DNA from: Ostrea edulis
Taxonomy: Eukaryota
Assembly (NCBI RefSeq): GCF_947568905.1
Contig: NC_079168.1
Location: 4,836,001-4,900,000, forward strand
DNA length: 64,000 nt
Direction of reading: 5' to 3'
Both the position numbers and the translations under genes were made by a program. Below the pieces are notes generated by a model that saw only the letters and a program-made list of their open reading frames with translations, was not told the origin of the DNA and ran no database searches. Positions 17,307-61,000 of this stretch are shown here, one piece after another (positions within the stretch are counted from its first letter, which is position 1; every line of letters starts with the position of its first letter).

Positions 17307-19372
17307 ATGAGAGGGGTGTTTAACATAATATGCACACTATGCTTAATTCCTAAGGCCTATGGTGAGTACTTTTGTAGTCTTCTTTTCTGAAGATGACCTG
17401 AATAATTATCATAAAGAAGAGGTTTTTGGACATAGATAAGTCACTGCGTGGACATTTATGATTTAATTTCCCCTCATATGCTAGTGAGACTGTAGTCGGT
17501 GTAATCCGGTTCTTTGATTGAATCTAATATCCATGTATGATTAAAAAGATAAAATGTGAACAGCAAATATATATAGAATACTAGTACTCTTCTTGGTATA
17601 TTCTTCACTTTGTTCAAGGCTCTATAATCGTGATTCTTTCATCTAAAAAGATTCTACATAACCTGTCATGAAATTTTAATGGTATTAACAAGACACCTTA
17701 CTTTTTTATATTACAGATAATGAAGATAGAACTGATAATTTAGACAATAAATATTTTAATTATCTTTACAGGGTTCTCCATTAGGCGGTCTTCGTTTGAC
17801 CCAAATGCATTATTCCAACAACAGGCTCAGATCGCATCTTCCTCCATTAAAGGATCCGGAAGTGTAGCGTCTCCTAGCGGAGGAACCTCGGGTTCTCAAT
17901 CCGGGGGTTCTTCAAGTTCATCATCATCATTTGACCCCAATTCTTTGAACAACCAAATGATGCAGAGTGCAAACCAGGGACCTCCAAACTCAGGCAGTTC
18001 TTCCGGCGCTGCGTCGTCTTTTGATCCAAATTCACTCAATAATCAGATGATGCAAAGTGGCGGTTCATCATCGGGAGGATTTGATCCAAATGCCTTGAAT
18101 AATCAAATAATGCAGCAGAACTCCCAAAGTAGCACCGGAGGTGGAAGTGGAACTGCATCATTTAACCCAGATACTGTAAATAAGCCGATATCGCAGTCTC
18201 AAAGCGCCGGTGGTTCCAGTGGTGGATCCAGTAGTTCTAGTCAGATGAGTGGAGGATCATCGTCCGGCTCATCGTCGTTTAATCCAAATACATTAAATCA
18301 GCAGATGTCCCAGCCCCAAAGTACTGGGAGTGGTAGCAGTATGGGAGGCGGTTCCAGTGCTTCCTCCGGTAGTTCTTCCTCTTTCAACCCAAACGCAATG
18401 AACCAGCAAATGTCACAATCCCTAAGTTCGGGAGGTTCAACTGGCGGATCTAGTCAAATGAGCGGCGGTTCTAGTCAAATGAGTGGTGGGTCTAGTCAAA
18501 TGAGTGGTGGATCTAGCCAAATGAGTAGTGGATCTAATCAAATGAGCGGTGGATCTAGTCAAATGAGTGGTGGTTCGTCTAGCATGTCAGGTGGTGGTTT
18601 TGATCCTACATCCATGAATAATCAGATGCTGCAAAATAATCTGCAACAAATGGCCACTGGTCAACAGACAAATGCCAACATGATGAGTGGTGGTTCTTCT
18701 GGCGGAAGCGGGGGTAGCTCAAGCATGTCCAGCATGAGTGGTAGTGGCGGATCCAGTGGAAGTGGAGGAGGAAGTTTTGATCCAAACTCTCTTAATAAAC
18801 CAGAAAATAATAAGATTGACCCTAGTATGTTTATGTCCAATATGGGCGGATCTGGCGGTAGTAGCTCGAGCGGAAGCTCCAGTGGCGGAAGTTCAAGTGG
18901 CGGATCCAGTCAAATGATGAGCGGAGGAAGTTCCGGTGGCGGAAGTTCCGGTGGCGGATCCAGTCAAATGATGTCGACTTCCAGCATGATGGGTGGAGGA
19001 AGTTCTGGTGGGAGTTCGAGTGGCGGATCTAGTCAAATGATGTCGCCTTCCAACATGATGAGCGGTGGAAGTTCTGGTGGGAGTTCAAGTGGTGGATCTA
19101 ATCAAATGATGTCGCCTTCCAACATGATGGGTGGAGGAAGTTCTGGCGGAAGTTCGAGCGGCGGATCTAGTCAAATGATGTCGCCTTCCAACATGATGGG
19201 CGGTGGAAGTTCTGGCGGGAGTTCTGGCGGAAGTTCAAGCGGCGGATCAAGTTCGAGCAGCGGAGGAAGCATGCCAAACTTTAACCCCAATCAGCTGATA
19301 CAGAACATGATGAGTGGCATGAATCTCATGAACCCTAGTCAATTTGTCGGCAGGAAAAGATTTGTCCGTTAA
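17307..19372 (+). CDS. Cluster gene 1: secreted Gly/Ser/Met/Gln-rich FDPN-repeat protein, ~551 aa; join(17307..17361,17772..19372)
   Basis: Signal exon MRGVFNIICTLCLIPKAYG ends g|gtgagt (phase 1). Acceptor tctttacag|gg gives G-FSIRR-SSFDPNALFQQQ in frame with the 475-aa ORF. Ends PSQFVGRKRFVR*; AATAAA at 19388. Confidence 0.85.
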
Positions 19373-20423
19373 ATGAGGAACAATTTCAATAAATTACGAA
19401 GTACATCTTTTTATGTCGTTTATTCAAATCCATTCGGGCCACTCAAATTTTAATCGGTTTGAAACACTTTGCCAGGGTAACCACTATGAGCCTATCAAGC
19501 GAAACCATGAATTAATACAAGAATTAAACGCGCATAACGATGCAAATTCTAACTATTTAGCAGAATGGTGAATCAAAACAATATGTACCGTAATTTCTGT
19601 CGGAGCTGCATGTACTTCCTAGTAGATCTTCAAAGGCAGCGAAGTAAACGCGACTTGCGCAAGCTATACTTATTCTCGCATCTGATTTGAAGATTCGTTG
19701 GAAACTCCACCTTCGTTAGGTTTTCAAACTTCCTGAATCAATAAATTACATGCTCTTGGTCCACCTTACACTTTCACAGCTCGACTCCTCGTTCTAGTTG
19801 CTATGCGTTATCGCTTAATGAAAAGTATGCTGGAGTGAAGCCTTGCTGTTTGTACCCTCATGTAATTTCGAAAAGGAAATTTATATTTTAATTTCATTCC
19901 TGTCGGAATATTCCCAGCCGTTGAAATCGTCGTAGTATACATGTATTTATTACTTCACTTTCATGAAGAAATGGCTATCATTTCTATTGGTAAAGATATT
20001 GACGGTAAAGACCTAGGAAATGTAAATATTATGCGATATAACCCGGGTTGAGCCACTTTACGCTCGATAAAAATTCATAATCCGCGAAGCTTATCGTAAA
20101 AAAGTGAAACTGACCCAAACCAGGTTATGTTGCATAATATGCCCCAAAATCAAATTCATTAAAATAATAAAACAATGTCCTTTCTAAACACTTTTTATTT
20201 CGTTTTATCTGGATTAACCTGTGCTATAGATCTGTGAGGGTTGTCCTTAGAGTTCGAAGACGAATGTCCATAAATGCGACGCTGACGTCTTACACTTACA
20301 AAGTATATACATGTACCGTGAGCAGAATCAACAATCACCAGTAGAAATGTCTACAAATAGTAGGAGATAAAGAAAAACAAAGACATAAAATTACACCCGA
20401 TATTGATATATCAAACATACCCC

Positions 20424-58078: not shown

Positions 58079-61000
58079 ATGTTACCAAAAATACTAATAT
58101 TTACATTGATATATTCCATATCAGCTGAATCCAATCGGTATGTGTTGGAATTCCGACGGCTACTTTCAAGTGAGTGTTTCTCATAGAATTATTTACTCCC
58201 CTATCGGCTAGTTTGAATTACAAATGTTATGAATAACCTTTATGGCAAATTTAAACTATCTACTGAAATTCGATTGATATGCTATTGATTTATATTTATA
58301 AAGGCAATTCAGTTCACAGAAGACAGACGTTTGATCCTAACGCCATGATGTTTGGAGGGGGAAGTTCAACTTCGAGTAAATCCCAGTTCATGGGCAGCTT
58401 CAACCCAAACCAGATGATGAGCAGCATGGGGACCGGCATGAATATGTTTAATCCTGGATCCCAAACTAGCGGACAGACCTCAACTCAATCATCCGGTACG
58501 ATGACGTCATTCGATCCCACAAAGCTCAACAATCAATTAAGCAGTTCTTCTGGATCCCAAACTAGCGGGCAGACCTCATCCCAATCATCCGGTACGATGA
58601 CATCATTCGATCCCACAAAGCTCAACAATCAATTAAGCAGTTCTTCTGGATCCCAAACTAGCGGGCAGACCTCATCCCAATCATCCGGTACGATGACGTC
58701 ATTCGATCCCACAAAGCTCAACAATCAATTAAGCAGTTCTTCTGGATCCCAAACTAGCGGGCAGACCTCATCCCAATCATCCGGTACGATGACGTCATTC
58801 GATCCCACAAAGCTCAACAATCAATTAAGCAGTTCTTCTGGATCCCAAACTAGTGGAATGGGCGGTGGTTTTAGTCCCAATCAAATGATGGGAGGTGGAA
58901 CTCAGTCTGGGGGAACCAGTGGAACCAGTTCGGGTAGTACCAATACTGGAGGCTCCTCTGCTTTTGGGGGTAGTTTTAATCCAAACCAACAAGGTGGTGC
59001 TCAGTTTACAAATCCAATGTCACAAATGGGAGGGGGACAGGGAGGAGCATCATCGTCAACTATAACAAATTATAATCCCAATAATGCCGCAGTAAATATG
59101 GCAGGAGGTTATGATCCAAATGCTGCCAACTCAGGACAGGGCACAGGAGGGAATGCACCATCATTTACGAACGGAATGGGCATGAATGCCCAGCAGCAAT
59201 CGATGGGAGGAGGGACCATGCCAAGTGGCAATGGCATGACGCAGCAATCAGGTAGTGGAGGTACTTCCACACCAAGTGGTGCAAGCAGTGGGGGTGGGAG
59301 CTCTTCTTTTGGAAGTCCCACTGGATCGGGAACGAGTTCACCTGGAACAGGTAGTGCTTCGTCATTTGGAAGTCCAACTGGCTCAGGAAGCAGTACCTCT
59401 GGAAGTGGTAGTTCCTCATCCTTTGGGAGTCCAACTGGATCTGGATCAAGCGCTTCTTCCTTTGGAAGTCCAACCGGATCTCCTAGTAACTCACAAGGAA
59501 GTCCAAGTTCTTTTGGCAGCTCTACCGGGACACAAAGTGCATCTACAAGCGGAGGCAGCAGTTCTGGTGCTGCAGCGTTTGGTAGTCCCACATCCGGAGG
59601 TGGGTCTTCATCTGGAAGTGGTGCAAGCCAGACTTCCGGTGGGGGATCAACAATGTCGTCATTTGATCCTATTAAGACAAACGTTGAGACAACTCAGACT
59701 GGATTTAATCCCCTTAGCCCAGCTTTAGGTATGGATGTGATTTATTGGGTACTATTATCAAGTTAAGGAAATAAGGTACTTTTATCAAGTCATCTTAATT
59801 ACACTATGCGTAACAATACAGCAAAATAAACGTAACTGATCGAAGTGAAGAATATTACCTATATCAATATGCATTACTTCGAGCATGTTTTCTTGTAGGG
59901 AAAGTACAAAACTTCATGGGACCCCAATCCAGTTGTGAGTATGACAGTTTTTGTAGCAGTACAAATTAATTCATATGTATTGCAGGGACACCCTTATTTC
60001 TTTTATTTATGTTTATTTAGCAACTGGTGGTGTTTTCGATCCCGGTTCAGTAAACACGCAGATGGCGGTACAAGGAGCTAGCTTGAATATGTTTGGAGGT
60101 AAGAGTTATCCCAGAACACTCAGAATGACTAGTAAATGACCAATACCAAACTGCGATACGACTGTCAAATATACTTTCTGCAAGTGGTCTGCCATTGCTA
60201 TACTAGGTGCTGGGGGCAGTGATCCAAACAAAATGGATGCCAGCTCATTAATGGGTGGATCTCCTGGAATGATGAGCGGAGCCAGTCAAGTTAATGGTGG
60301 ATCCAGTAGTGGTGGAAGTAAGACAAACATATTTAATCCTATGGGATCAATGATGGGTGGATCCACTGGGAGTGGAGGTGGAACTTCGGGTCCTATGAAT
60401 ATGATGAATTCTATGATGAGTACATCTGGCTCAGGAAGAACGAGCAGTTCAAGTAACGTAGAAGTTTCTAAAAGTAACTGGATAAGATATACAGTGTATG
60501 GAAACGGCTGAAAATTATTCATACATGTATATGCAAGCGTCTAGAACCTATCACTCTTCTGTTATGAAAACTTCAAAATATTCCTGTATGTACAAATTCA
60601 GTGGCGTCATATTGCAAACAAACTAATCGCGATTTAAGAAATGCGTTTCATAGCTGTTCCATTTTAGTTGACTGTTCAACGTAAAGTTAATAGAGAATTA
60701 AAAATTATCAAAACACTCCTCAAATAACACGTGTGTAAAATCATTCGTTTGGGAGTAGCTTGTGCCTTATGAATTAGAATGCACTCTTGCAATAAACGGT
60801 GCATGGGATTAATCATGAATAGAATCAAGCAATACTTACCTATTTCCTCTGTTAACTGTAGGTGGTACTTATTTCCTCTGCTGACTGTAGGTGGTACTTA
60901 TTTCCTGTGCCGACCGCTGCGATGGCCGAGAGGTTAGAGCGTTCGTCCCGCATGCGGAAGGCCGGGGTTCGAATCCCGGCCCCGACAGACCAAAGTCATT

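Follow-up and report, generated by a model that had tools for sequence, protein, structure and literature searches.

The genes g1, g3, g4, g5, g7 and g8 of a 64,000-nucleotide stretch of the Ostrea edulis genome (NCBI RefSeq assembly GCF_947568905.1, contig NC_079168.1, positions 4,836,001 to 4,900,000 of the forward strand; hereafter the window) encode secreted proteins that carry a prohormone-like code, in which a basic site is followed by Gln on the N-side and Gly is followed by basic residues or a stop codon on the C-side. A preliminary description of the window had pointed to such motifs; all those that it listed are present, and the pattern proved sharper than it had stated. As judged from the sequences, this is a real and conserved processing signature on a previously undescribed family of bivalve secreted proteins, and the signals look functional in the predicted cleavage and end-capping. 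On balance we lean towards the reading that these are low-complexity proteins that are cut by convertases and capped at their ends, and that they would serve, as a best guess, in an extracellular gel or matrix and not as classical neuropeptides.

Processing sites at the unit ends

Scanning the window in six frames for F-[DN]-P-[NDST] gave 56 matches, 55 of which fell into seven blocks on defined strands. Gene models were built from canonical GT-AG sites, open frames and orthologue annotation, the nearest named relatives of the window genes being those of Saccostrea oysters, and signal peptides were called by inspection. Blind splice enumeration against annotated lengths left many ambiguous solutions for g4 and for g7 of Saccostrea echinata, so models by analogy were used for these. 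The family genes share a plan in which a signal-peptide exon is followed, after a phase-1 intron, by Gly/Ser-rich exons bearing F-[DN]-P-N motifs; the leaders are hydrophobic, 15-20 residues long, and each lies on its own phase-1 exon. The proteins are cysteine-free, of low complexity and Arg-free within their units, and are further marked by the F-[DN]-P-N motifs and by a module of ~52 residues; g1, g5 and g8 lack this module yet retain the end code.

Each run of two or more basic residues in the family proteins of the window belongs to one of two types. The N-side type consists of two hydrophobic residues and [KR]R, followed by Gln (Ser in g1), and is represented by SIRR-SS (g1), PIKR-QS (g3), SFRR-QS (g5) and VHRR-QT (g8), and in g7 by RVR-QT, IVKR-QS (three times) and VQRR-QT. 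The C-side type is X-Gly-[KR]2-3, or Gly-stop, or Gly with one basic residue and a stop, and comprises FV-GRKR (g1), TF-GKK-stop (g3), AF-GRK-stop (g4), IV-G-stop (g5) and, in g7, QV-GKR (three times), PT-GKR and LL-GR-stop. No dibasic run lies outside the unit boundaries. Indeed, all 22 of the Arg residues that follow the signal peptides of g1, g3, g4, g5 and g7 are within 67 boundary residues out of 1,794 (3.7%), and in the first 505 residues of g8 Arg is confined to a propeptide of ~21 residues. Lys occurs within units (2.9% overall), never adjoining another basic residue. Gly (background 20.5%) precedes every C-side basic run, and Gln (background 5.6%) follows nearly all N-side sites. This pattern is far beyond chance; since the paralogues share ancestry, it represents the conservation of a shared motif and not a repeated coincidence.

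On the forward strand, g1 has a first exon at 17307-17361 (signal peptide of 19 amino acids (aa), phase-1 donor GTGAGT) and a second at 17772-19372, which opens with (G)FSIRR/SS and closes with QFV-GRKR-FVR-stop. The protein has 551 aa and no Arg from residue 25 to residue 545. The preliminary description had placed FV-GRKR at the very C-terminus; the motif is there, with FVR intervening before the stop. We considered the end PSQFV-G as a PRQFVamide-type peptide and rejected this, as the 520 residues upstream hold no basic site. On the opposite strand, g3 consists of a signal-peptide exon with a phase-1 donor (25232-25280) and an exon running from (S)PIKR/QSS to FDPSTF-GKK-stop (24609-25000); its protein has 146 aa and its structure is that of the 142-aa annotated Saccostrea genes. 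Also on the reverse strand, g4 (35555-37002; exons 37002-36951, 36767-36636 and 35697-35555) was modelled after a 106-aa Saccostrea gene and encodes 108 aa that lack an N-side basic site and end in FDPNAF-GRK-stop. The FG/NPF-repeat-rich g5 (39539-40629, reverse strand; exons 40629-40566 and 40413-39539; 312 aa) has the site ..SKSFRR/QSS and ends in ENIV-G-stop. Its repeats (GSNPFGGSFGGGFG-x-PSN; 39539-40413) resemble the cohesive FG repeats of nucleoporins, and hold NPF triplets, despite the signal peptide.

The first exon of g8 (58079-58169, forward strand) encodes the signal peptide and the start of the propeptide; the second (58304-59728) reads (S)NSVHRR/QTFDPN... and continues for 468 residues without Arg. 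Further exons on this strand lie at ~60017-60103, 60206-60427, 61326-61380 and 63449-63520 (span 60017-63520), and they, like the first, are conserved with S. echinata. The gene extends to at least 63.5 kb, its C-terminus lying beyond the part recovered in the window. The genes begin upstream of the span of 17783-58330 that had been given for the pattern, with the signal exon of g1 at 17307, and g8 extends beyond it.

The code recurs along the polyprotein of g7 (49698-55078, forward strand), a clean open reading frame (ORF) of 766 aa in seven exons (49698-49761, 49864-50029, 50771-51072, 51762-52208, 52488-52934, 53214-53660 and 54651-55078) with GT-AG introns, five of phase 1 and one of phase 2. 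It contains five units joined by GKR-(0-3 residues)-[KR]R-Gln. Exons 3 to 7 each have their own N-side and C-side site and are joined in phase 1; the junctions read PTGK-R-IVKR/Q, QVGKR-G-IVKR/Q (twice) and QVGKR-G-VQRR/Q, and the C-terminus is LLGR-stop. A unit exon of 447 nt is present in three tandem copies (51762-53660, forward strand): copies 1 and 2, each of 726 bp with the intron counted in, agree at 99.6%, and the exon of the third is 99.3% identical. To judge by these values, the middle exons are a very recent tandem triplication, and the near-identity, introns included, suggests recent duplication or gene conversion. Comparison of the stretches that hold the unit exon (window 51762-53939, L001 15086-16073 and L002 14239-17320) gave three copies each in the window and in S. 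cucullata, and two in S. echinata.

Conservation in oysters and other bivalves

With g6 as a non-repetitive anchor, we retrieved the syntenic loci of S. echinata and S. cucullata. Both contain g2, g3, g4, g6, g7 and g8, with gene order and orientation unchanged, and the syntenic genes retain KR/Q, RR/Q, G-[KR][KR]-stop and the polyprotein junctions of g7. The 142-aa annotated orthologues of g3 are reproduced by the two-exon logic, with ...CFS-IPVKR-Q... on the N-side and ...TF-GRK-stop at the end (GKK in the window). The orthologues of g4 close with AF-GKK-stop (GRK in the window), and those of g8 keep the propeptide and have VQRR-Q in place of VHRR. S. echinata g7, rebuilt by the rule used for the window, has exactly the annotated 630 aa; its junctions are PSG-RRRR-Q, in which the spacer is absent, QVGKR-SLF-KR-Q and QVGKR-NI-RRR-Q, and it too ends in LLGR-stop. 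Across orthologues the spacers (IV, SLF, NI or none) and the choice between Lys and Arg drift, and the Gly, the basic pair and the Gln stay constant. An orthologue specific to g5 was not found in the Saccostrea flanks, where tblastn matched only the low-complexity parts of g7 and g8, and none of g1 was recovered in this comparison.

The preliminary description had made conservation in orthologues the test of its sites. Those of the family pass it in Saccostrea and, as described below, in a scallop, a unionid and further bivalve contigs. The exception is the internal LPKR-QT of the neighbouring gene g2, which aligns to LVRKGEKG in S. cucullata; because it is not conserved there, we take it as a chance occurrence and reject it as part of the pattern. 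The family proteins resemble prohormones in having a signal peptide, units bounded by dibasic KR or RR with none inside, and a Gly that immediately precedes the stop or the basic residues of the C-side; they also show conserved sites with drifting spacers, which the g2 site does not.

A profile of the conserved ~52-residue module, searched against 1.84 billion representative proteins, matched 30 proteins at E ≤ 0.001; for 19 of these E was ≤ 1e-10. Where the source is named, the matches are hypothetical proteins, from the scallop Mizuhopecten yessoensis and from the freshwater mussel Potamilus streckersoni, and their identity to the oyster module, between Pteriomorphia and Unionida, is 46-78%. 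By this comparison the family spans at least Pteriomorphia and Palaeoheterodonta, whose split is old. All named module matches are from bivalves, and a restriction to bivalves cannot be claimed from this. The N-side ends of the homologues (ALVKR-Q, LTR-Q, MRR-Q, SKR-Q, NRR-Q, RRRR-Q, GLFRR-Q and GKR-Q) follow the rule of the window, the sole clear exception being GRR-DTQ in a protein from a marine metatranscriptome. Their C-side ends are QLG-RRR, QLG-KRR, QLG-KR, MMAG-KRR, MMTG-RRR, PPG-RRRR, SGG-KKR, QMG-K-stop and GGGG-R-stop. Across the family, between 0 and 4 basic residues stand on the C-side, and Gly precedes them in every case. At the lower limit, one terminal unit in the bivalve contig L005 ends in ...QMA-G followed by TAA, with AATAAA 30 nt downstream, and a distant g3-like protein appears to end in ...SVFG. 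Exact-sequence look-ups for the homologues P0009 and P0039 gave no match, and a stop behind the last Gly of P0039 is therefore only presumed.

In L005 (ENA ERZ25069866, bivalve; 5993-12836), a g1-like exon (LFNR-Q ... NQFV-GK, phase-1 donor) is followed immediately by g7-like exons in the same orientation, and units of the g1 and g7 types may be fused in one polyprotein in that genome. A word search with the g1 exon found nothing, low-complexity candidates having swamped it. The ESM Atlas gave no usable match, Pfam at E ≤ 0.1 none for any window protein, and the named matches to the window genes are only 'hypothetical' or 'uncharacterized'.

These data bear on the possibility that the pattern is a product of chance or annotation, with noise ORFs or pseudogenes in low-complexity DNA whose exon ends mimic cleavage sites. 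Low-complexity DNA does give long ORFs on both strands, and searches of RNA runs gave no evidence for the gene models in the Ostrea edulis genome. A 5.4-kb g7 stretch retrieved only runs not recorded as RNA; the last g7 exon retrieved three RNA runs, each with a small share, and two small runs that carry no label. Four runs aligned to 49640-52380 gave only matches of 90-95% to an interspersed repeat in g7 intron 2 and no exon contig, the alignment covering the first half of g7 (its tandem repeat was avoided) with the exon 6-7 junction outside; the Logan contig L004, which bears g6, is colinear with the genome and hence uninformative. The nearest to transcript evidence that we found is the marine metatranscriptome protein mentioned above, which comes from plankton and combines a signal peptide, the module and GKRGLFRR-Q in one product. 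Against an artefact stand the intact syntenic orthologues of both Saccostrea species, which follow the splice logic of the window genes and give the annotated length exactly, the 19 proteins that match the module profile at E ≤ 1e-10, and an Arg distribution far from random. We therefore regard an artefact as already disfavoured, and scarcely credible.

The conserved module also raises the main rival to a gel or matrix role, namely that the family is one of signalling proteins (hormone, pheromone or settlement cue) whose ligand is the end-capped module, the Gly/Ser tracts of oysters being lineage-specific padding. In its favour, the units of the scallop protein P0009 are only ~57-65 residues long between basic sites and carry little padding, and known large amidated hormones reach this size. 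Retention of the module between Pteriomorphia and Unionida would fit a ligand, as would a homologue in plankton, and the precursor is multi-copy with spacers, as in neuropeptide genes. Molluscan FMRFamide-type polyproteins share with the family a signal peptide, repeats bounded by KR or RR, Gly before the C-side pair, short spacers and an N-terminal Gln. Classical neuropeptides, however, are short, typically under ~60 aa, with a specific conserved active core, and of the family products the scallop units come nearest to this. In contrast to the FMRFamide-type precursors, the oyster family yields products of 88-520 aa that are mostly of low complexity and probably disordered, several of its genes have a single unit, and g1, g5 and g8 keep the end code without having the supposed ligand. 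Additionally, the family motifs are absent from the text of two bivalve neuropeptide surveys, and literature searches found no published description of the family or its motifs. We consider a signalling role unlikely for the family, though it is the alternative that we take most seriously, especially in view of the compact scallop units.

Predicted maturation and its precedents

The simplest account of the sequences is the one that the preliminary description had offered, in which convertase cleavage, carboxypeptidase trimming, amidation and pyroglutamate (pyroGlu) formation act in turn. All four are standard steps of peptide maturation, and oysters make amidated and pyroGlu neuropeptides. The products would be made as pre-pro-proteins (g1, g3, g5 and g8) or as a polyprotein (g7). 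After removal of the signal peptide, a proprotein convertase of the subtilisin type would cut behind the hydrophobic-[KR]R sites, freeing a propeptide of 5-21 residues or, between g7 units, spacers of 0-3 residues. C-terminal Lys and Arg would next be trimmed by an enzyme of the carboxypeptidase E/D type, peptidylglycine alpha-amidating monooxygenase would convert the Gly end so exposed to an amide, and the new N-terminal Gln would cyclise to pyroGlu. The predicted products have 520 aa (g1), 122 aa (g3), 88 aa (g4), 286 aa (g5) and, for g7, 152, 141 (three times) and 135 aa. Most sites are plain KR or RR with aliphatic or aromatic residues at P3 and P4 and no Arg at P4; they resemble sites of the PC1/3, PC2 or Kex2 type more than the furin RXXR, which weakly fits a regulated pathway. 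That the products are structural, that they leave the cell in dense-core granules or that they act as pheromones, as had been proposed, remains conjecture.

The most telling feature of the sites lies on the C-side, where the basic residues vary in number and the Gly does not, as expected of an amidation signal and contrary to expectation for a functional basic tail. Gln is fixed at P1' though convertase cleavage does not need it, which suggests selection on the new N-terminus.

The same features bear on a further explanation, in which the conserved motifs serve assembly and not convertase cleavage or amidation, as charge clamps, as Gln/Lys cross-links made by transglutaminase, or as targets of extracellular trypsin-like proteases. 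Mature regions are nearly uncharged, so that terminal basic clusters could matter, both Gln and Lys are available, and short dibasic propeptides also occur on bulk proteins that are secreted constitutively (RGVFRR in proalbumin). Yet a role for charge predicts the reverse of a C-side basic run that varies from 0 to 4 beside an invariant Gly. The spacers between doubled sites are variable or absent, as would be expected of discarded pieces, and the strict lack of internal Arg fits avoidance of mis-cleavage. For these reasons we find an assembly function of the motifs doubtful.

In the maturation scheme that we prefer, the products would be disordered chains, with aromatic 'stickers' set in 'spacers' of Gly, Ser, Asn and Gln, and one or both of their ends would be blocked. 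Outside the module, the proteins consist of Gly, Ser, Asn, Gln and Met with regularly spaced Phe, and we infer from this composition that they are of the sticker-and-spacer type of gel- or condensate-forming disordered proteins. AlphaFold2 gave no confident fold for a 56-residue module (23-row alignment; pLDDT (predicted local distance difference test) 59.5, pTM (predicted template-modelling score) 0.21). Such chains could form an extracellular material (a mucus-like gel, the organic phase of shell or ligament, or an adhesive) whose ends are blocked against exopeptidases.

Several points weigh against this interpretation. Cleavage, amidation and pyroGlu formation are predictions, a length of 88-520 aa is unusually large for amidated peptides, and the matrix or gel function is a best guess from composition. 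The counts across paralogues are not independent, owing to their shared ancestry, and Gly is the second commonest residue, which makes Gly before a basic run less surprising than usual. Ser and not Gln follows the g1 site, g4 has no N-side site, and the RNA run searches lent the gene models no support.

The use of such a code on proteins other than hormones has precedent, by analogy, in human salivary proline-rich proteins (PRPs) and proalbumin, which are secreted in bulk and cut by convertases at basic sites. PRPs are of low complexity and have pyroGlu N-termini, and the propeptide of proalbumin has 6 residues ending in RR. These proteins differ from the oyster family in having no sequence relation to it, no C-terminal Gly-basic amidation signal and, in PRPs, another consensus (RSXR). 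In Ustilago, Rep1 is a repeat polyprotein that Kex2 cuts at KR sites into a peptide in many copies, and the resulting repellents are an extracellular material rather than a signal; Rep1 is fungal and unrelated in sequence, with small units and without the amidation or pyroGlu code. Among molluscan materials, the shematrins, MSI proteins and abductin of shell, ligament and byssus are secreted, Gly-rich and Cys-poor, and their genes are clustered in tandem; the C-terminal tails of shematrins are basic, and abductin is rich in Gly, Met and Phe, like g1. No homology of the window genes to these families was detected, to judge by the lack of a Pfam match and of a named relative. To our knowledge, the F-[DN]-P-N module, KR/Q and X-G-basic ends are not features of the shell, ligament or byssus families.

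If the sites are used, the maturation pathway of peptide hormones would extend, in a major animal group, to disordered proteins that are secreted in bulk. If they are not, the strict confinement of Arg to unit ends would still need an explanation. The analysis also delimits a family of conserved bivalve proteins, which databases enter only as hypothetical. The preferred reading predicts exact pyroGlu and amide termini for ten window products and a complete lack of internal Arg. Chains that are Arg-free and Lys-poor are likely to be invisible to trypsin-based proteomics of shell or mucus, and the family may have gone unnoticed for this reason. Its sequences also form a natural sticker-and-spacer series, useful for studies of secreted gels and adhesives. 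A bolder and rather improbable extension is that bivalves use the neuroendocrine processing toolkit for material proteins, as disordered and Arg-free chains of 100-500 residues with pyroGlu and amide caps; if true, no earlier family of extracellular low-complexity proteins would be both large and end-capped. More speculatively, the g7 junction pieces (GIVKR, SLFKR and NIRRR) or ...GR ends could feed a pool of C-terminal-arginine peptides, which Zimmer-Faust and Tamburri are said to have reported in 1994 as a waterborne oyster settlement cue.

Neighbouring genes and repeats

Two other genes of the cluster lack the end code. On the forward strand, g2 (22862-24485) is a P/Q-rich secreted neighbour outside the F-[DN]-P-N family; it has repeats of the type PLPQIQVAQPLPQIAVGQP, and its composition recalls vertebrate proteins of the amelogenin or casein type. 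Its signal exon, of 40 nt, is short and of phase 1 like those of the cluster. The synteny anchor g6 (43718-46720, forward strand) is an ORF of ~1,000 aa with F-x-P-x-x-V-N motifs and many internal Arg and Lys. It is conserved in oysters, with 46-78% identity to Saccostrea and other contigs, and has no Pfam domain. Its C-terminal half contains repeated F-[DN]-P-x-x-[VI]-N-x-x-x-M-x-F motifs, the protein has ordinary amounts of Arg and Lys, and g6 may be a non-processed relative of the F-[DN]-P-N family.

The interspersed repeat in g7 intron 2 (50100-50560) is matched at 90-95% identity by more than 800 contigs in each of the small runs X8 and X9, and pieces similar to it lie near 53715-53900 and 60869-61243; it is very abundant in the genome or the transcriptome. 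The window as a whole is AT-rich, with eight satellite arrays that occupy much of the intergenic space. They lie at 8456-10443 (period 19 bp), 12816-16826 (24 bp), 25555-27718 (23/46 bp), 29560-34959 (59/117/176 bp), 37865-38508 (32 bp), 42264-42581 (35 bp), 55399-56256 (43 bp) and 62128-62457 (41 bp). The 24-bp array has ~167 copies and contains long spurious ORFs on both strands.

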